DNA of 64,000 bases, taken from Setoptus koraiensis (Eukaryota > Animalia > Arthropoda). Made by a program: the position numbers and the translations under genes. Below, one piece after another: positions 17,892 through 56,293 of the stretch. The stretch's first letter is position 1, and every line of letters starts with the position of its first letter. Under the pieces are notes generated by a model that saw only the letters and a list, made by a program, of their open reading frames with translations, searched no databases and was not told the origin of the DNA. The stretch covers positions 6,510,001-6,574,000 of the forward strand of contig CM106585.1 in assembly GCA_048013815.1 (NCBI GenBank). The letters run 5' to 3'.

Positions 17892-18984
17892 GGGGGGGGG
17901 GGTGTGATCTGCTAGGGATGTGGTGTGGGTGGTTGAGATTGGGTTTGGGGTGTGGGGGTGTTGTGTTGTTGGGGGGATGGGGTGTTTGAATGTGGGGAGT
18001 GGGGGTTTTAGGACTAGAGACTCTCGAGATTACGTGGGCCAAGAATATCGCCTGGTGACCGTGGCAAAGGGGGCTATGCTAAAAGTAGGGGGGGGGGGGG
18101 GGTTGGGGGGGGTGGGGGTGGGGGGGGGGGGGCGGGGGGGGTGGGGGGGTCAGGAGTTGCACTGCTCCCGCTTGAGGGGTGGGGGGGGGGGCGGGGGGGG
18201 GACTGACCAGCAGGAACACATAGCACTAAGAAATTCCCGTGCGATACAGTACTACAGCTGACCATGCGACTAAGATAAACACTGCGTTTACTAAACGCGA
18301 TACAATGATCCACAAAGCGGAAACCACATATATTACAGTCTTGTTAGTAACGAAGTAGCTCATCATTTTAATATGTAATACGTAGTATCTCTCCCACCCA
18401 TAGATATGAAGTCTAATCATCAAGCTTGAAAACTATCCCATGATGGCAGTAAGAAAAACTGTGATTTCACCAGTACGTCCACTCTCACCAAACCATTTCG
18501 AAACATTTTTACTAGAAATTAGCGGCATCTGAACCGCAAGTCCGTTCGTCTGTCTGCAGCGTAGCGCGCGCGCTTTTGCTCAAGAGCGGTTTATGTATGG
18601 TGGTTGCCATTCTCTACGCCCCTCTCCCCCCCCCATGCGCGGCGCCAACCCGCAATCTGCTATCCGCACACCCCCATCAATACCCTCAAGTTGAGACTCC
18701 AACCCTCTCAAGCGATGGAGAAATAGGGGTGGGGGGGGGGGGGAGGGGGGTGGGGGCCAAGATTTGCAACACACCACCCCAACCGATGCACCTAACACGG
18801 CGCCGCTAACCCGCTCCACAAGGATGGGACCCAGCGGGGGGGGGCTCACCACCACATACACCGCAAATGCAAACCTTGGGGCAACACCGCACGAGCGGGG
18901 GGGGGGGGTGGGGGGGGGGGGGGGGTGGGGGGGCGGGGGAGGGGGGGGGTATCTATAATGGGGGAGGGAGGGTGGGGGGTGGGG

Positions 18985-19021
<37 letters not shown>

Positions 19022-19900
19022 GGGGAGAGGGGGGGGGGGGGGGAAAAAACCCCCCACAACTCAACCAACACCCCCCCATCAAACCTACCCCCACCCAACC
19101 CCCCCCACCAACAAAACTTGAGTGCCTCCCCCCTCTCAAAAAACGCCCACCACCCCACAACACCCAAATCACCACCAAAAAAGGGGGGGGACCCTCCTCC
19201 CCCCGAACACCCCTCCCCCTCACCGACCACCCACCCCCCACACCCCCCCACCCCACCCGCCGAAACAGCCCCCCCCACCCCTCCTACCCCACATCCGGTA
19301 CAACGACCCTACCCCCCCCCTCCACAGCCCATGCCGCCCACCCCCCGCCTCCTCCCCGCCTCCCGCACCACCCCCACCACCAGACCCCCGCTGCATCAGC
19401 CGCGTCCGGACTCGCTCCCCCCCACCCCACCCCCCCGCATCAACTGAGCCCGCCCAAGCACACTCATCATTCTACCCCAGCCCAACTCGCCTACACTCCC
19501 AACCCACAGGCACTACCCGGCCCCATCCCACCCGACCAACCCTCGCCCGAGCAGAAAGGCCTCTACATCACGGGCCCCCCCCGCGGGGACGAAAGGGGGG
19601 GGGGGGGGGGGGGGGTGGGGAGGGAGGGGTGGGGGGGGAAACTCATACAGGATGTATTTCAGACTATAGCCCCCCTCTCTGCCCCCCACCCCCCACTCCC
19701 ACCCGGCCTCGGGATTGGCCACCCAATATTAACGCCACCACCCCCACCCCCAAACGCCCACACCCCCCCGCACACCACCAGACCCCGCCCAAACCCAGCA
19801 CACTGCCTCCTCCCCCCCCCTCCCTCCCGACCCTCACCCCTGCCTTCCGCCCCAGATCCCCCCCCCCGCACCCCCCCCCCCACCCCCCCCCGCGACCCTT
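17499..19900. other. Low-quality G-/C-homopolymer-laden sequence adjoining the gap (probable sequencing or gap-fill artefact)
   Basis: Long poly-G then poly-C runs interspersed with normal-looking fragments; composition unlike the rest of the window. Confidence 0.8.
18226..18540 (-). other. Error-ridden fragment of a class A GPCR (TM2 end to TM4)
   Basis: MPLISSKNVSKWFGESG...FLTAIMG*FSSLMIRLHIYGWERYYVLHIKMMSYFVTNKTVIYVVSALWII shows an ECL1 W-FG motif, the ERY motif and the TM4 Trp 26 residues after the ERY Arg. There is one in-frame stop. Confidence 0.45.
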
Positions 19901-31876: not shown

Positions 31877-31909
<33 letters not shown>

Positions 31910-32092
31910 GTGCGCGCGTGTGTGCAATCGAACAAACCAGCTAGCGAACATGTGAGTTTGTGCGCTCGAATTGTGTGAAAAAGAACAAACGAGCAAGCGA
32001 ACTATTGATCGAGCTACCGAACAAGCGCAACAGATGAAAATGTTGCCGCTGCAGCAGTGTGTGTGCGCTAGCAGTCATGCTCACATTGGGCT

Positions 32093-32137
<45 letters not shown>

Positions 32138-32245
32138 TAGTGTAGCAGTGTGAATAGAATGAAATGTTTGAATCGTCGCTCGCTTGTCGCGCCGTCTACT
32201 GCTACTCACTGCATTAGTCTCCCTCTCCCTCGCTCGCAAGCATTG

Positions 32246-32288
<43 letters not shown>

Positions 32289-32290
32289 GC
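31877..32290. repeat. Cluster of (TG)n/(CA)n microsatellites upstream of the HSF-like gene
   Basis: Dinucleotide runs at about 31877-31925, 32095-32135 and 32253-32290. Confidence 0.9.
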
Positions 32291-32772
32291 ACACTTGCAC
32301 ATTCTGGCAGTATCAGCAGTGCAGCAATAGAATTTTGCTGCTCGGCTAGCGCTGCCAAAGCGGCCGCTTGGGCTGCTGTTAAAGGCTAGCTAAAGGGAAG
32401 GGGGAAAGGAAACAAACGCACGCACCGAACTGTTTGTATTGCTCGTGCATTACTAGGTTCTTTGCACTACTACAATACAACAACTACACATTCAACAATT
32501 GCTACGACAAATTCTATTCGCTTGGCGTTCGTCACTCGGCACCGTCCTCCGCTTGTAGCTGATAGCTGTAACATAATCGTCGCAGATTTAACATATATTA
32601 TAATTATTCTCTTATTAGTCACCACCATTAAGTTATTATCGTCGTCCTCTAGAGGTACTTGGTGCTGACTCGGTTACAACTATTATCACCACATTACTAC
32701 TATTATTATCGCCGTCCAACCGCTCACAAAGACACAGTGAGAGAGCGAGGGAGATAGAGAGACATTTGTATC

Positions 32773-38205: not shown

Positions 38206-39143
<938 letters not shown>

Positions 39144-39157
39144 TAAAAAGCACTTAT

Positions 39158-39400
39158 GGACACTTGACATCTACGTCAGGTGAACGGCAAGTTAATCACA
39201 GTGCCAGGATAGCCAAATTTGATCAAGACAGTGGACAACATCTGACTACAGGAGGAAATCTTAATTGCAAGCCAGTTGTCATTATCAAACTATGCTCGTT
39301 TGGTTCACAACACGCTCATGCGAATCTGTGCAAAGACTACAAAGAAACAGGATTCTGTGGCTACTCCTGCATTTATCTTCATGATAGATGAGATTACAAG
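39158..39400 (+). pseudogene. Mosaic of an ABCF1 NBD2 fragment (~57844-58035) and a second RNF113A CCCH fragment
   Basis: [30 protein letters not shown] vs ABCF1 [30 protein letters not shown], followed by [22 protein letters not shown]. Confidence 0.9.
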
Positions 39401-46916: not shown

Positions 46917-48605
46917 TCAAGAAATCCAACGAAAATATTTACAAGATGTAATCAATGGCTTATTTGGGTCTCCTTTAGGCAAGGAACAGGCCCAAAATCT
47001 TTTTTTGTAATTTGGACCTTGTTTACCACAAGTGTTCATGACACAAGGAACTTTATGACCATCACATAGAGGGGGTTTAGGAGGTCCTGCCATAATTTTA
47101 TCCAATAGACTGATTTTCGGTTTCTCTTTCGGAGACTTTGATTTGGCTGAAGACGATTTGCGCTCTCCGGTCACTGTACCATTTTGAGTTGCTTTGCAAT
47201 CTTGGGTGGACACAGTGTTATCTGTTGAATTTCCAGAATCACTAATCGGACCGGATCCAACATTACCCTCCGATTCATTATTGGCTTCGCTTTCCACTTT
47301 GACTGTATATTCCACTGTATCTTCACAGTCAGCTTCAGCTTTATATTCGACAGTCACTTTAGGATCAGCATCGAGAGTTGGGTCTACATCCATCTTAACA
47401 TCTTTTTCTTCATTCTTTTCTTCATTTTTCTTGCTTGGTATTATCATGAAAGCCTTGATACTACTCTGCTGAATTTGCTTTTTCTTAGTCTTTTTCTGGT
47501 TCTTAGTGACTTTGACATTCTTAGGAGAAGGATTGACACTTGGAGCTGAAACTTTTTTCGGTGGAGATTTCACGGGTTGTTGAGACTGCGAAGACGTTTG
47601 ACTGCTGGTCTTATTGAAGAAAGAGGTCAGCCTTAGTTGCTTTTTACAGCCAAACTCTGGCCATAGTTTTGTAGATATTGAGGGATAATCAGGACTTGCA
47701 ATCCATTCTATATTATTGAGTGTGATAGAAACAGGACAATGATCCGAGCCCATGTAACTCGATAAAATCGACACATTTTCTATATGTTGTGACAGTCCTG
47801 AATCAACAAGTACATAGTCTATTCGAGTACCAAAATTGGTAGCTCTGGCTCTTATTTGAGTATTCCAGCACGTGAATGCCTCTACTGTGTTTGGGTGCAA
47901 TAGCCTATAGGAATCAATCATATGCCTGCGCAAATTGTTCTCATCCGGTTCGAGAAATGACGTTAACCATTTTTTATAAATACATTCGTCGAAGTCGGGA
48001 CTTGGATCACAGTGGTCGATCTGTTTGTGAGATATGTTCATGTCGCCAGCAATTATCACATGAGCGGCTGGATCTTGTAAGTATACATTTGTTTTCATTT
48101 CAATCAATCTATTGAATCTGTCTTTGAATTCATCTCTACCCGCTTTGTCAACATCGAGCCGAGGGAAGTAAACATTGAATATGTACAATTTTTTTGGCTC
48201 CTCTACCTCCAGCATCTTTACACGGTGGCAAGTAATCAGGCATCTACCTTCCGAATCTAATTCCTTGACGAGATTCTTCTTAGAACCATACTCATCGTGC
48301 ATGCTCAATGTCTCTCTCCAGCTATCCGAGCAGTTTGCTTCATCATTCAATCCGGCTTCAGCGTGGAATGGACGTGCCTCCTCGCGACAATAGGTGGCAC
48401 AACCAGAATATCCGGCCATGAGTCTTGGAAAGACAAACTGTGATGAGAAGCCATCTATGAAGGCCACAGCTTCATCTACTTGATTCCTGGACAGTTTAGT
48501 TTCTTGTAGACAAACGATATCTGAATCCAAGTCTTTGAGCACTTTGTTGAGATCTTTGAGGGTTCGCAATCCATTGACATTCCAAGTGGATAGTTTGATC
48601 ACCAT
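46917..48605 (-). CDS. APEX2: AP endonuclease 2 (EEP domain, PIP box, GRF Zn finger)
   Basis: STWNVNG, CLQETK, AGDMNISH, GTRIDY, GSDHCPV, PIP-like QLRLTSFF and C-terminal PLCDGH...GPNYKKRFWAC...CKYFRW. Confidence 0.96.
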   Translation of the reverse strand: MVIKLSTWNVNGLRTLKDLNKVLKDLDSDIVCLQETKLSRNQVDEAVAFIDGFSSQFVFPRLMAGYSGCATYCREEARPFHAEAGLNDEANCSDSWRETLSMHDEYGSKKNLVKELDSEGRCLITCHRVKMLEVEEPKKLYIFNVYFPRLDVDKAGRDEFKDRFNRLIEMKTNVYLQDPAAHVIIAGDMNISHKQIDHCDPSPDFDECIYKKWLTSFLEPDENNLRRHMIDSYRLLHPNTVEAFTCWNTQIRARATNFGTRIDYVLVDSGLSQHIENVSILSSYMGSDHCPVSITLNNIEWIASPDYPSISTKLWPEFGCKKQLRLTSFFNKTSSQTSSQSQQPVKSPPKKVSAPSVNPSPKNVKVTKNQKKTKKKQIQQSSIKAFMIIPSKKNEEKNEEKDVKMDVDPTLDADPKVTVEYKAEADCEDTVEYTVKVESEANNESEGNVGSGPISDSGNSTDNTVSTQDCKATQNGTVTGERKSSSAKSKSPKEKPKISLLDKIMAGPPKPPLCDGHKVPCVMNTCGKQGPNYKKRFWACSLPKGDPNKPLITSCKYFRWIS

Positions 48606-48759
48606 TGTTAAGTTGTACGAAGACAATATGGTGAAAGACAAGAGATCTAATACGATTTATATTTACTAATAGTCGGAATGAAGTCCACCGAACTGTAAAT
48701 AGATCGATTGCAAATCGGGCGAACAAGACACGAGAGAGAAAAAACAACTATGACGTATA

Positions 48760-49280
48760 GCGCGAAATCTAAAATGTGTTTTTTCCATATCCACGCGTGA
48801 ATAACAGCTCCTAATCAAATGACTGGGCCACTATCGATCGCAGTTTGTGAATAGTAAGAACAGTTTTTTGTTGCGCGTTGCACAAGCATCTGCTAAAAAG
48901 AAGAATCAAACCGCATGTTCTCCATCCAAACCATGTGAGCTTTGTTTTTGTATGAGAATGTACTCTTGAGGTCTATTCCCGACAAGACTTGTGGGGCACT
49001 AAGGCTGGCATCTTTCTCGTTAACATTGGATCTTTACGATATTAATTATGGCAGGCAGCAGGCTTGCAAACTTCGGCCCTATATTCTCTAGGTAAGTGTC
49101 TCACTATAGACCCTCCACCATTTTCTTGATACGACTCATCATCAATAATCTCATCCAACAGGATGACAGGTCTCTTGGAATCCAGCACCATCAAGGAGGG
49201 TCCTACATGGTATACCGTGCACAGATTTCGCCCTCTCGTACATCACAGCTCACTATCCACAGTGGAAATCAAAGAGAAAC
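48760..49280 (+). repeat. Inverted duplicate of the MRPS23 promoter, exon 1, intron and start of exon 2 (partner at ~50370-50905)
   Basis: Exon 1 is 41/44 nt identical; the intron ends gtaagtg...ctcatccaacag are shared; upstream aatcaaaccgcat...aaccatgtg...ttgtttttgta is shared. Confidence 0.92.
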
Positions 49281-50236
49281 CACCTAAAGAGTACTGTGAA
49301 CCGACCAAAAAGTCTAAACGAACCAAGACTCGTGCGATCTTCGAGCTGATGCGGTGGCACAAGCCCATCGGTACCTTCTTAACATTAACGCCAGCATTAT
49401 GGTCTGTTGGTCTAGTCACACCATCAACGCAATTATTTCCAGACCCTTATATTCTGGCGGTTTTCACAGCTGGAGCGATTGTAGCTAGGGGTATCGGATG
49501 TACGATGAATGATATATTGGATAGAGATTTTGACAGGCAAGTGGAAAGAACTAAGGATCGGCCCATAGCTTGCGGTGACATATCCACCAAAGAGGCTCTA
49601 GTCTATCTAGCTATTCAATCTTCATTAGGTCTCTTTATATTGTGCCTGAACAATGCTCTAGTGATAAAATTGGGATTATTTAGTGGGCTTCTGATTGCCA
49701 CTTATCCATTATTCAAACGATTTACCTACTGGCCCCAAGTAATGTTGGCACTGACGTTTAATTGGGGTGTACTCATGGGCTTTGCCGCTGTCAGAGGGAC
49801 ATTAGAACTTGGTGATATTCCCGTTTTTGCACCTATATACTTAGGTTCAATTTTTTGGACTCTCTACTATGACACGATATACGCGCATCAAGATAAAAGT
49901 GACGACGAAATTATTGGGATAAAGTCAGCTGCCTTGAAGCTTGGGTCGCATACCAAAAAATTTCTCAACGCAATGAATCTAGGAATGTTCTCTAATTTGG
50001 CCATGGCTGGTATCATGACTGAACAATTGTGGCCTTACTATTTATCAGTGATTGCCTCAAATCTATTCCTCGCCCAACAAACAAAAAATGTTGATTTAGA
50101 TAATTCAGAGGATTGTTGGAAGCAGTTCAATAGTCAAAAGTATATTGGTCTTACTATATTAGCAGGGGTGTTAACTAGCCTAGCCTTAAAATCTAGACGC
50201 AACAGTGAAAATGTAGAGTCAAGTTGTAATCAATAA
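49048..50236 (+). CDS. COQ2: 4-hydroxybenzoate polyprenyltransferase COQ2 with an MRPS23-derived N-terminus, 372 aa (exons 49048-49091, 49162-50236)
   Basis: UbiA motifs MRWHKPIGT, GCTMNDILDRDFDRQVERTKDRPIA and YDTIYAHQDKSDD. A 70-nt phase-2 intron joins MAGSRLANFGPIFSR to the ORF. Confidence 0.95.
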
Positions 50237-50277
50237 TAAACGGGAATCTAAATATATTCTGGCAAACATGGTGATGA

Positions 50278-50610
50278 CTATTTATTTGACTTTTCCGTCG
50301 TATAAGCGGACAGTTGAGGCAACGGCTTTTTGGCCAGCTCGTAATCTTCTTTATATACTATCTCTCTTATCTCCAAAGTAGAAGGTGTCCGATTTGCATT
50401 GGGTTCCACCGGCGGGGGAAATCTTTTGTACACAGTATACCAAATCGGAACTTCCTTAACAGCGCCGGATTCTATGAGACCTGTCATTCTGTTGGATGAG
50501 AATAGCGATGATGAGATGCTGACCTAAGACGAGGCGTGAACACGGTGAGTGCATTGAGTCACTTACCTAGAGAATATCGAGCCAAAGTTTGCAAGCCTGC
50601 TGCCTGCCAT
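50278..50610 (-). CDS. MRPS23: Mitochondrial ribosomal protein S23, short 84-aa form (exons 50610-50567, 50488-50278)
   Basis: MAGSRLANFGSIFSRMTGLIESGAVKEVPIWYTVYKRFPP.VEP...IREIVYKED matches mS23 (MAGSRLETVGSIFSR...PLWFDVY.AFPP..EP...I.Y.ED); 78-nt intron. Confidence 0.88.
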
Positions 50611-51101
50611 AGTTTTTCTGCCGAATAGATTTTTATCGTACAGGTCCTATATCAGCACGTGGAAAGTTGTGTCTGGAGATTATTTTTCGGGATATGAGTC
50701 GCAAGGACATTCGAGTGTTTTCTTCTACAAAAACAATCGTGAAACACACATGGTTCATAGAGAATGCGGTTTGATTTTTATCTCTTGCACTTGCCTGTGT
50801 AGCACAAACCACAACAAACAGTTGTTGCCATGAATAGTGGACCACGATTCATGGTCGGACTAGTATCATATGCATGCGTGTAAACACATTTAGTTCTCTC
50901 GCGCACCACACCAGGCGCAGTAATCCTCGTCGTTATTTACCCGTGAATTTGGTAAAAACAAATTTCAGATTTCGCGCTAGGCCCAATGTTGTTTCTCTGC
51001 GGCTCCATTTCACTCTCGTCTGATATTCAATCTGTCGCTATCGAAATAGCTTCACGAAAACGTACTCTATATTAGAATTTTTGTTGTTATCAACAGAAAC
51101 A

Positions 51102-51971
51102 ATGATGGACAACAGCGACAGCGAAATGATGGTGGACGATTTGGATCCAGAGGCTGAACATCTAGCTCAATTGCAACAGCAACTCGAGGCACCACCCTCG
51201 GTTGCACCGCCTGTCCAACAAAAGACCCAGCAGCAACCGCCGCCATTACCACCTCCACCGCTCGCCCCCGCAACACCCAGTCAAGATGTCACTAACAGTA
51301 ACTCGGTGGCTAACACCCCGGTCGCCCCAAAGAGCTCGTCGGCTCTTGGTCCACTATCTGTGGCCAGTTTCATGCCACCAACGCCTGGTCCACCTCCTAT
51401 GACACCGATAACGCCACATTCCACTGATGCTGGCCTTGTTCCACAATTGCAAAATATCGTGTCAACGGTGAATCTTGGCTGCAAATTGGACCTAAAGAAG
51501 ATTGCTTTGCACGCTCGTAATGCAGAATACAATCCAAAACGATTTGCCGCCGTCATCATGAGGATAAGAGAACCAAGGACAACAGCGTTGATATTCAGCT
51601 CTGGTAAAATGGTGTGCACTGGTGCCAAAAGTGAGGAACAGAGTCGATTGGCTGCCAGAAAATATGCGAGAATTGTACAAAAGCTTGGATTTGAGGCAAA
51701 ATTCTTAGACTTCAAGATACAAAATATGGTTGGTAGTTGTGACGTGAAATTTCCAATTCGTTTGGAAGGTCTTGTTTTAACTCATAGTCAGTTCTCTAGC
51801 TACGAACCTGAACTATTCCCTGGTCTTATATACAGAATGGTGAAGCCCCGCATAGTTTTGCTTATATTCGTTTCTGGCAAAGTGGTTCTTACCGGTGCCA
51901 AAGTCAGAACAGAGATCTATGAAGCTTTTGAGAACATATATCCTATCTTGAAAGGTTTCAGGAAGCAATAG
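51102..51971 (+). CDS. TBP: TATA-box binding protein
   Basis: Canonical core [43 protein letters not shown]...[10 protein letters not shown]. Confidence 0.98.
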
Positions 51972-55668: not shown

Positions 55669-56293
55669 TAGTGATCGGGGGAGAGCGGGAGAGCGTCTCC
55701 CAAATGGGAGGTTCCCCTCTCCCCTCCCGTTCAAATTTTTGGGAGAGGGAGAAAAAATCTCCCCCTCCCGTTTCAAACTCGGGGAAGGGGAGAGGGCATC
55801 TCCCCCTCCCTCTCCCGCTCGGGGAGACGGGAGAGGGCATCTCCCTCTCCCCCTCCCGCTCGGGGAGATGAGAGAGGGCATCTCCCGGGGAGAAATCCGT
55901 CTCCCGGGGAGAGCCCGGGGAGACGATTTCTCCTGCAGACACTGCAACAGGCTCACTAGTTTTGCCCATATTCAGCAATTGACGAGGACAATTAACAGTG
56001 GACACTGATATTTTGCCAAAAAAACCAGTGAATTGTCGTGGCGAGTGCCATGCTGACGAGATCGTCTCCCCGGGCTCTCCCCGGGAGACGGATCTCTCCC
56101 CGGGAGATTCCCTATCCCGTCTCCCCGAGCGGGAGAGGGAGAGGGAATCTCCCTCTCCCCCTCCCAAAGCGGGAGACGGGAGGGGGAGACTCCCTCTTCC
56201 CTCTCTTGACAGCGGGAGGGGGAGATTTTTTCTCCCTCTCCCCTCTATACAAGGCGGGAGGGGGAGAGGGAGAGGGCTCTCCCCCGATCACTA
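55669..56293. mobile_element. Non-autonomous hAT-type MITE, 625 bp
   Basis: Perfect 18-bp TIR TAGTGATCGGGGGAGAGC (55669-55686; 56276-56293) and 8-bp TSD GGGATCAA (55661-55668; 56294-56301). The empty site is seen in the paralogous copy at 38206-38213. Confidence 0.95.

Follow-up and report, generated by a model that had tools for sequence, protein, structure and literature searches.

A COQ2 gene of the mite Setoptus koraiensis with a promoter, intron and leader probably derived from the neighboring MRPS23

The stretch of DNA analyzed here, 64,000 nucleotides of the mite Setoptus koraiensis (assembly GCA_048013815.1, contig CM106585.1, positions 6,510,001 to 6,574,000; the window from here on), contains a compact group of four genes in the order APEX2 (-), COQ2 (+), MRPS23 (-) and TBP (+). 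COQ2 and MRPS23 (the gene of the mitochondrial ribosomal protein mS23) are convergent and lie between divergent outer neighbors, with a spacer of only 41 bp between their stop codons (50237-50277). On the COQ2 side is APEX2 (AP endonuclease 2; 46917-48605, minus strand, ATG at 48605), with the Pfam domains Exo_endo_phos (7e-20) and GRF zinc finger and P0121 as nearest homologue (79% identity). On the other side, divergent to MRPS23, is TBP (51102-51971, plus strand, ATG at 51102, Pfam TBP 2.9e-69), for which an RNA contig starts at 51027. This layout had been proposed by an earlier reading of the letters alone (the sequence-only reading), and the coordinates of the open reading frames (ORFs) and the Pfam matches agree with it.

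The UbiA prenyltransferase domain (PF01040) covers residues 75-322 of COQ2 and, at 189.8 bits (E 6.6e-56), is well above the Pfam cut-off of 34.2; the translation contains the Asp-rich motifs NDILDRDFD and YAHQDKSDD, and the best named matches are all annotated as "4-hydroxybenzoate polyprenyltransferase, mitochondrial", the nearest named relatives being those of the eriophyoid mites Aceria tosichella and Fragariocoptes setiger. The enzyme core is under strong purifying constraint, with a ratio of non-synonymous (dN) to synonymous (dS) change of 0.10 in the comparison with the sister species described below. The neighboring MRPS23 is intact, spliced and expressed, and its 84-aa product matches Pfam MRP-S23 (PF10484) at 1.8e-12.

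The most conspicuous feature of this pair is that the two genes begin with the same module. A diverged inverted repeat, with a left arm at 48758-49312 (plus strand, 555 bp) and a right arm at 50326-50979 (minus strand, 654 bp), brackets the segment 49313-50325, which holds the COQ2 core together with the 3' portion of MRPS23. The repeat search detected four inverted blocks in collinear order, of 48, 24, 60 and 89 nt with identities of 85, 79, 92 and 80%, respectively; the MAFFT alignment of the arms has 76% column identity with several indels, and blastn of one arm against the other gives three collinear matches (E 8e-34 over 201 nt at 76%, 1.4e-11 over 48 nt at 85%, and 3e-7 over 111 nt at 69%). 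No further copy of the module was found by blastn elsewhere in the window.

The copied module comprises the promoter, the 5' untranslated region (UTR), a 44-nt exon 1, a phase-2 intron and the first ~50 codons of exon 2. In COQ2, the promoter and 5' UTR occupy 48758-49047 (inverted blocks I3 and I4, which correspond to the blastn matches of 1.4e-11 and 3e-7; RNA contigs start at 48960 and 48981). They are followed by exon 1 (49048-49091, MAGSRLANFGPIFS plus 2 nt), a 70-nt GT..AG intron (49092-49161), the mS23-derived part of exon 2 (49162-49312, 50 codons from MTGLLESS to EPTKK, containing block I1) and the ancestral UbiA core, which runs from SKRTKTRAIFELMRW to the stop codon (49313-50236). 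On the opposite strand, the promoter and 5' UTR of MRPS23 (50611-50979), divergent to TBP and delimited by the repeat search, MAFFT and blastn, are reached by RNA contigs to 50703 and 50760; then come exon 1 (50567-50610, MAGSRLANFGSIFS plus 2 nt), a phase-2 intron of 78 nt (50489-50566) and exon 2 (50278-50488, 69 codons plus stop), whose initial 54 codons (50326-50488) fall within the right arm. The two first exons are identical at 41 of 44 positions and both are followed by GTAAGT, while the linker part of COQ2 exon 2 is identical to mS23 at 42 of 66 nt, a value reached by none of 5000 shuffles. The sequence-only reading had already described the shared exon 1 and the phase-2 introns, and in this it was right; its promoter of 290 bp includes at least ~88 nt of 5' UTR, and the copied coding part, which it put at ~55 aa, is closer to ~65 (15 from exon 1 and 50 from exon 2), with the junction at 49312|49313. 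Two promoter motifs of the left arm, AAACCGCAT (at -140) and ACCATGTG (at -118), are common to the right arm and to the left arm of the sister species, at matching distances in all three promoter copies visible. In the outgroup locus L002 only a one-mismatch AATCCGCAT at -78 was found, and this is the only outgroup for which the scan is valid, since at four of the five loci the intron after MRPS23 exon 1 put the scanned stretch outside the promoter.

To see how the locus is transcribed, four runs were mapped to 48500-51150. Two of them, X7 and X8, behave as RNA, because their contigs are spliced and the intergenic promoter regions are left uncovered; a run labelled as RNA-Seq (X17) had no reads here and is uninformative. 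Record 2 of X7 covers 48960-49089 and 49160-49349, and record 7 of X8 covers 48981-49089 and 49160-49491, both with 0 mismatches and both skipping the 70-nt intron (the joint, 49089/49160, can be shifted by 2 nt to the GT..AG cut). The splice of 49091 to 49162, anticipated from the letters, is therefore joined in contigs of both runs, and the X8 contig, extending from 48981 to 49491 across it, holds exon 1, the mS23-like stretch of exon 2 and the beginning of UbiA in one molecule; an mRNA that starts downstream of the duplicated segment, which would have refuted the sequence-only reading, is not what these contigs show. A spliced chimeric COQ2 mRNA thus exists. MRPS23 is spliced at the homologous place in the same two runs (joint 50488/50567), and the contig starts of both genes fall in homologous duplicated upstream parts (48960 and 48981 on the left, 50703 and 50760 on the right). 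Both runs also contain 35-nt matches to 49710-49744, with 3 mismatches and long unlike flanks, that probably stem from a foreign COQ2, of the host or a co-occurring species.

An inverted pair of this kind could be suspected of being a misassembled fold-back, or the transcripts of being contigs that merge adjacent genes, as is often the case in compact genomes according to the A. lycopersici genome paper (PMC7738191). This warning does not apply to COQ2: its joint is a genuine GT..AG splice found in two runs, and the genomic DNA itself carries one uninterrupted frame leading from the module into UbiA. The arms, only 76-92% alike and with indels, are also unlike a fold-back artifact. A DNA contig of a different sample (X1) spans 48500-51150 with 0 differences; it may come from the same source material as the window, but runs from at least four other samples and studies contain all the sampled words of the locus, and the identical layout occurs in a second species (see below). 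Neither the misassembly of which the sequence-only reading had warned nor a merged contig is what these data look like, and we consider an artifact extremely improbable.

The direction of the copying can be deduced from the proteins. The N terminus of mS23, MAGSRL..G.IF.R, is conserved from mite to mammal, and is retained in mature mitoribosomes, where several deposited mS23 chains align from residue 1 or 2. In tblastn searches, the mS23 of the outgroup locus L002 matched the right arm (E 3e-24) and also, with E 2.2e-7, the left arm, at 49048-49092 (80% of 15 aa) and at 49160-49225 (55% of 22 aa). The leader module of the sister species' COQ2 passes the Pfam MRP-S23 cut-off (7.1e-5, 23.5 bits against 22), while the exon-2 module of the window's COQ2 taken alone (53 aa, without exon 1) had no Pfam MRP-S23 match at E<=10. 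The leaders of the 27 outgroup COQ2 proteins are unrelated to mS23. All this agrees with MRPS23 as the donor, the direction originally put forward. Among ~40 eriophyoid-type COQ2 proteins the mS23-like start was found only in the protein of the sister species (P0001), the remaining leaders being ordinary and mutually unrelated.

The ancestral state is also apparent in the outgroups. At five of six eriophyoid outgroup loci (L002, L003, L005, L006 and L007), which have a Pyr_redox_2 gene ahead of COQ2, the same tail-to-tail pair of COQ2 and MRPS23 occurs and the duplication is absent, as expected if COQ2 exchanged a presequence of its own for the copied one. The outgroup COQ2 genes are single ORFs and all 27 of their proteins have an N-terminal leader of 60-90 aa. 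When these are anchored on the motif MRW, conservation sets in abruptly at position -12 (S-G-R-S-K-x-R-S-I-x-E-L-M-R-W), and in the COQ2 of the window the homology to mS23 stops at -13 and the COQ2 consensus resumes at -12. The whole variable leader has therefore been replaced, with no loss of conserved core, which places the junction at 49312|49313. Most outgroup MRPS23 ORFs begin at the position of exon 2 (MTGLLE...), so that the intron is ancestral to MRPS23 and reached COQ2 with the copy. This phase-2 intron after codon 14 of MRPS23 is demonstrated by splicing in the window and implied by the exon-2-position ORF starts in L005-L007. In L002 (7098-7373) MRPS23 is intronless, a single ORF of 91 aa starting with MAGSRL, which is a lineage-specific intron loss.

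Comparison of COQ2 N termini among related mites, which the sequence-only reading had proposed, thus leaves a single sister species sharing the mS23-like leader. Its COQ2 is 81% identical to that of the window, and in the COQ2 tree the two form a clade with 100/100 support within an eriophyoid polytomy. The stem of this clade is the longest internal branch of the tree (0.71 changes per site), which could reflect either unsampled diversity or a faster evolution of the COQ2 core after the leader swap. The layout of the locus in this species was obtained from two contigs of its run. One (L001) has COQ2 and MRPS23 tail-to-tail, with contig ends that are mutually reverse-complementary inside the intron, and therefore the assembler broke at an identical inverted repeat. 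The other (L009) has APEX2 facing the promoter copy, followed by an mS23-type exon 1 (MAGSRLSNFGSLFS) and GTAAGT. The whole architecture, including the APEX2 flank, is common to the two species, and a single origin before their split is the parsimonious reading.

The arms themselves give a more complex picture. Over the intron tail and codons 1-28, 17 informative sites group the sequences by species, none by gene and one otherwise. The intron tails of the two arms are identical at 36 of 37 positions in the sister species and at 25 of 37 in the window, compared with only 15-17 of 37 between species. Synonymous divergence between the arms of the sister species amounts to 0.23, whereas the COQ2 cores of the two species differ by 0.59; between the arms of the window it is 0.24 for exon 1 and 0.82 for codons 1-28. 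Because the arms are more alike within than between species, the pattern indicates gene conversion between them, which took place recently in the sister species and longer ago in the window. The COQ2 module of the window has 19 private changes (dN 0.21-0.31) and, going by these substitutions, is drifting away from mS23. The same 17 sites against none are what would be expected if the two species had gained the module independently, by recurrent duplication, and not by a single event followed by gene conversion. This reading could also appeal to the linker of the sister species, which resembles mS23 only weakly (27/66 nt, p ~0.02, and 24/66, p 0.12) and in which the junction cannot be placed. 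(A 22-codon equal spacing of this junction was considered, fails when anchored on MRW and is not used as evidence.) Nevertheless, independent gain would need the same donor, orientation, recipient, use of exon 1 and intron and APEX2-facing layout to have arisen twice in sister taxa and in none of the ~40 other eriophyoid COQ2 genes, and gene conversion between inverted repeats is the ordinary explanation for the likeness. Moreover, the left arms of both species have TTGGATCT and the right arm of the window has TAGGACCT. We regard two separate gains as improbable and keep to a single origin with later conversion.

How such a structure may have originated is suggested by its geometry. In the common ancestor of the two species, a local rearrangement would have set an inverted copy of the MRPS23 5' module in frame before the COQ2 core, so that the promoter and presequence native to COQ2 were replaced, with the exchange falling exactly where the variable leader gives way to the conserved core; gene conversion would afterwards have kept the arms alike. 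The mechanism that we favor is a micro-inversion of ~1.6 kb in which one break was staggered over the MRPS23 5' module and the other fell in the COQ2 leader, since one such event would copy the module in reverse orientation and at the same time eliminate the former 5' end of COQ2. Inverted duplicates flanking a segment have been attributed to inversions with staggered breaks in Drosophila, where inverted duplications of otherwise unique sequence were found at 17 of 29 inversions, with sizes from 46 bp to 1.9 kb (median 321 bp), and can be one-sided (Ranz et al., 2007, PMC1885836). The COQ2/MRPS23 arms (555 and 654 bp), lying as inverted duplicates around 49313-50325, are within this range. If a micro-inversion took place, which arm is the copy and which the original is undecidable. 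The cassette is symmetric, and a prediction that follows is that an exchange between the arms on the upstream side of the junction would turn the core around while leaving MRPS23 intact and COQ2 chimeric.

For the step of origin alone, the same final structure could have been produced by template switching or fold-back (of the type of fork stalling and template switching or microhomology-mediated break-induced replication, FoSTeS/MMBIR), or by a copy inserted upstream of COQ2, with the old 5' end lost separately. TBP would then be the original neighbor of MRPS23 and the left arm the copy. There is no remnant of the old leader in the ~50-125 bp between the right arm and TBP, where an inversion predicts one unless it was later deleted, and this favors the copying mechanisms. 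On the other hand, they require two coincident steps (an in-frame insertion exactly at the core boundary and the loss of the old promoter and leader) in place of one, and both flanks of the pair differ from those of all outgroups, so that breakage at both ends occurred in the lineage. Taking both sides together, an origin by template switching or copy-and-insert is quite possible, if somewhat short of an even chance, and the micro-inversion remains our preferred mechanism.

What the copied module does in COQ2 can be approached through the start codon. The ATG at 49048 is the first AUG of the observed 5' UTR (48960-49047 contains no ATG) and has a good context, with A at -3 and G at +4; translation from it would give a product of 372 aa. 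The N terminus so obtained has its first acidic residue at position 21 and, in the first 20 residues, a charge of +2/0 with two arginines. In being free of acidic residues over this length it equals mS23 and resembles the outgroup COQ2 leaders, which stay acid-free for much longer. The first 30 residues of yeast Rsm25, which the search of solved structures lists as mS23, hold targeting information despite low presequence scores (Bykov et al., PMC8724765). Because of the charge pattern and of this yeast result, the mS23-derived leader probably imports COQ2 into mitochondria, its mS23-type N terminus having taken over as import signal from the presequence that was lost. The basic motif R-x-K-x-R-[AS]-I retained just before ELMRW may be, as a guess, a processing site. 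The copied promoter would put COQ2 under an MRPS23-like transcriptional control and probably co-regulates the two genes.

A less demanding role for the module would be that it is transcribed without being a functional leader, translation starting at M16 (ATG 49163) or the residues being neutral filler, with import directed by signals internal to the UbiA core. Polytopic inner-membrane proteins can have internal signals, ATG 49163 is in frame and conserved in the COQ2 of both species, the module of the window evolves fast and residues 29-50 of that of the sister species are barely recognizable. Against this, exon 1 with its well-placed first AUG is intact in the COQ2 of both species, and a start at M16 would give an acidic N terminus (D/E at residue 6) unlike every outgroup leader. 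A leader of 60-90 aa is, besides, kept in 27 of 27 outgroups and is apparently needed. A module without a leader function is consequently unlikely, in our view, and a working leader the better reading.

A bolder variant goes further than the import reading and assumes that the mS23-derived region is not removed after import, the mature COQ2 carrying an mS23-like domain (~65 of the 84 mS23 residues), and that the 1-kb core may switch, through recombination between the arms, between two isomers that work equally well. We think this very improbable. If true, the retained domain could bind the partners of mS23 on the mitoribosomal small subunit or its assembly line, and together with the shared promoter it would couple ubiquinone synthesis to mitochondrial translation, physically or by regulation.

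Taken as a whole, the best explanation of the locus, and one that we hold to be likely, is that COQ2 is a chimeric gene with an MRPS23-derived leader acting as import signal, which arose once by a local rearrangement, for which a micro-inversion is the favored mechanism, and was later subject to conversion. Several observations weigh against it. The runs X7 and X8 carry no library-type label and their RNA nature is deduced from splicing and coverage, and since their contigs show presence and not absence, isoforms of lesser length, initiated within the intron or exon 2, are compatible with them. The low dN/dS of exon 1 could come from MRPS23 by conversion and not from selection on COQ2, and the fast-evolving exon-2 module of the window, below Pfam MRP-S23 recognition, fits a relaxed leader and equally one that is merely tolerated. 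As to the rearrangement, APEX2 or TBP was found beside the COQ2/MRPS23 pair in no outgroup locus examined, so that the inversion cannot be polarized, nor was any trace of the former COQ2 leader detected. Three outgroup APEX2 loci were without COQ2, MRPS23 or TBP, and the genes flanking the pair in outgroups (Pyr_redox_2; CDK2AP, p29 or Alg14) are absent from the window.

Other repeats were seen elsewhere in the window. A stretch resembling a CCCH zinc finger is encoded by two adjacent direct-repeat blocks (38772-38854 and 39323-39399), which are 38 and 37 nt long with 92% and 84% identity and are separated by ~550 bp; over 38206-39143 the repeat search detected a direct repeat but no inverted one of 40 nt or more. 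At 55741-56242 there is a nested inverted repeat with arms of up to 109 nt, 87% complementary and 113 nt apart, and G/A-rich ends, which could be a foldback element or a hairpin locus. Long near-pure poly-G tracts face poly-C-rich tracts over ~1.8 kb at 18084-19900, a very unusual composition for a compact genome, and (GT)n and (CA)n microsatellites of 50-60 nt each are found in inverted arrangement at 31877-32306.

A literature search found no paper on a COQ2 leader copied from MRPS23. Chimeric genes formed by partial duplication are well known (jingwei and the Drosophila chimeric-gene surveys), a partial copy supplying promoter and 5' exons, and they are usually additional, dispensable genes. 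At the mite locus an intact adjacent donor, an ancestral recipient without the module and one transcript joining both parts are all found, but the event remodeled the only visible copy of an essential enzyme. A close parallel is presequence copying in plants. As summarized in PMC2631504, nuclear genes there obtained the targeting region at the N terminus of their mitochondrial product from a duplicated 5' portion of a second gene whose product is also mitochondrial (rice rps11-1 from atp2, Arabidopsis sdh3 from hsp70 and carrot rps10 from hsp22; Kadowaki et al., 1996). As far as that summary goes, the plant recipients were genes newly transferred from the organelle and without a presequence, whereas COQ2 is an old nuclear gene whose existing presequence was replaced. 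Compared with the plant cases as given there, the donor region of COQ2 is also the mature and normally uncleaved N-terminal domain of a ribosomal protein, promoter and intron were transferred with it, the sequence comes from the convergent gene alongside, the copies undergo gene conversion and the host is an animal.

With the inversions of Drosophila (PMC1885836) the mite locus shares an inverted duplicate of unique genic sequence around a short segment, of a size within the range and with one-sidedness allowed. The Drosophila duplicates are mostly decaying fragments, whereas the mite copy is the working 5' end of an essential gene, and the inverted state of the mite core cannot be shown, given the symmetric cassette and flanks that are unconserved in the outgroups. 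Yeast Rsm25 (PMC8724765) is alike in that the mS23 N terminus is uncleaved, has a poor presequence score and carries targeting information for a foreign passenger, the green fluorescent protein (GFP). There, the fusion was engineered and of 30 residues, while that of the mite is natural, puts ~65 mS23 residues on a polytopic inner-membrane enzyme and has an import that is predicted.

The mite gene would thus be a natural swap, in which an essential enzyme that lost a canonical presequence depends, as far as is visible, on the unconventional N terminus of a mitoribosomal protein. The portability of such signals, so far shown only with GFP in yeast, becomes testable in an animal. It also illustrates that a single local rearrangement in a compact, intron-poor genome can supply a complete 5' end (promoter, intron and leader), and for COQ2 the transfer of the module amounts to an intron gain by duplication. 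In the inverted arms, gene conversion between functional 5' modules can be studied and dated, and two mitochondrial functions may have been wired to one promoter type in these mites.

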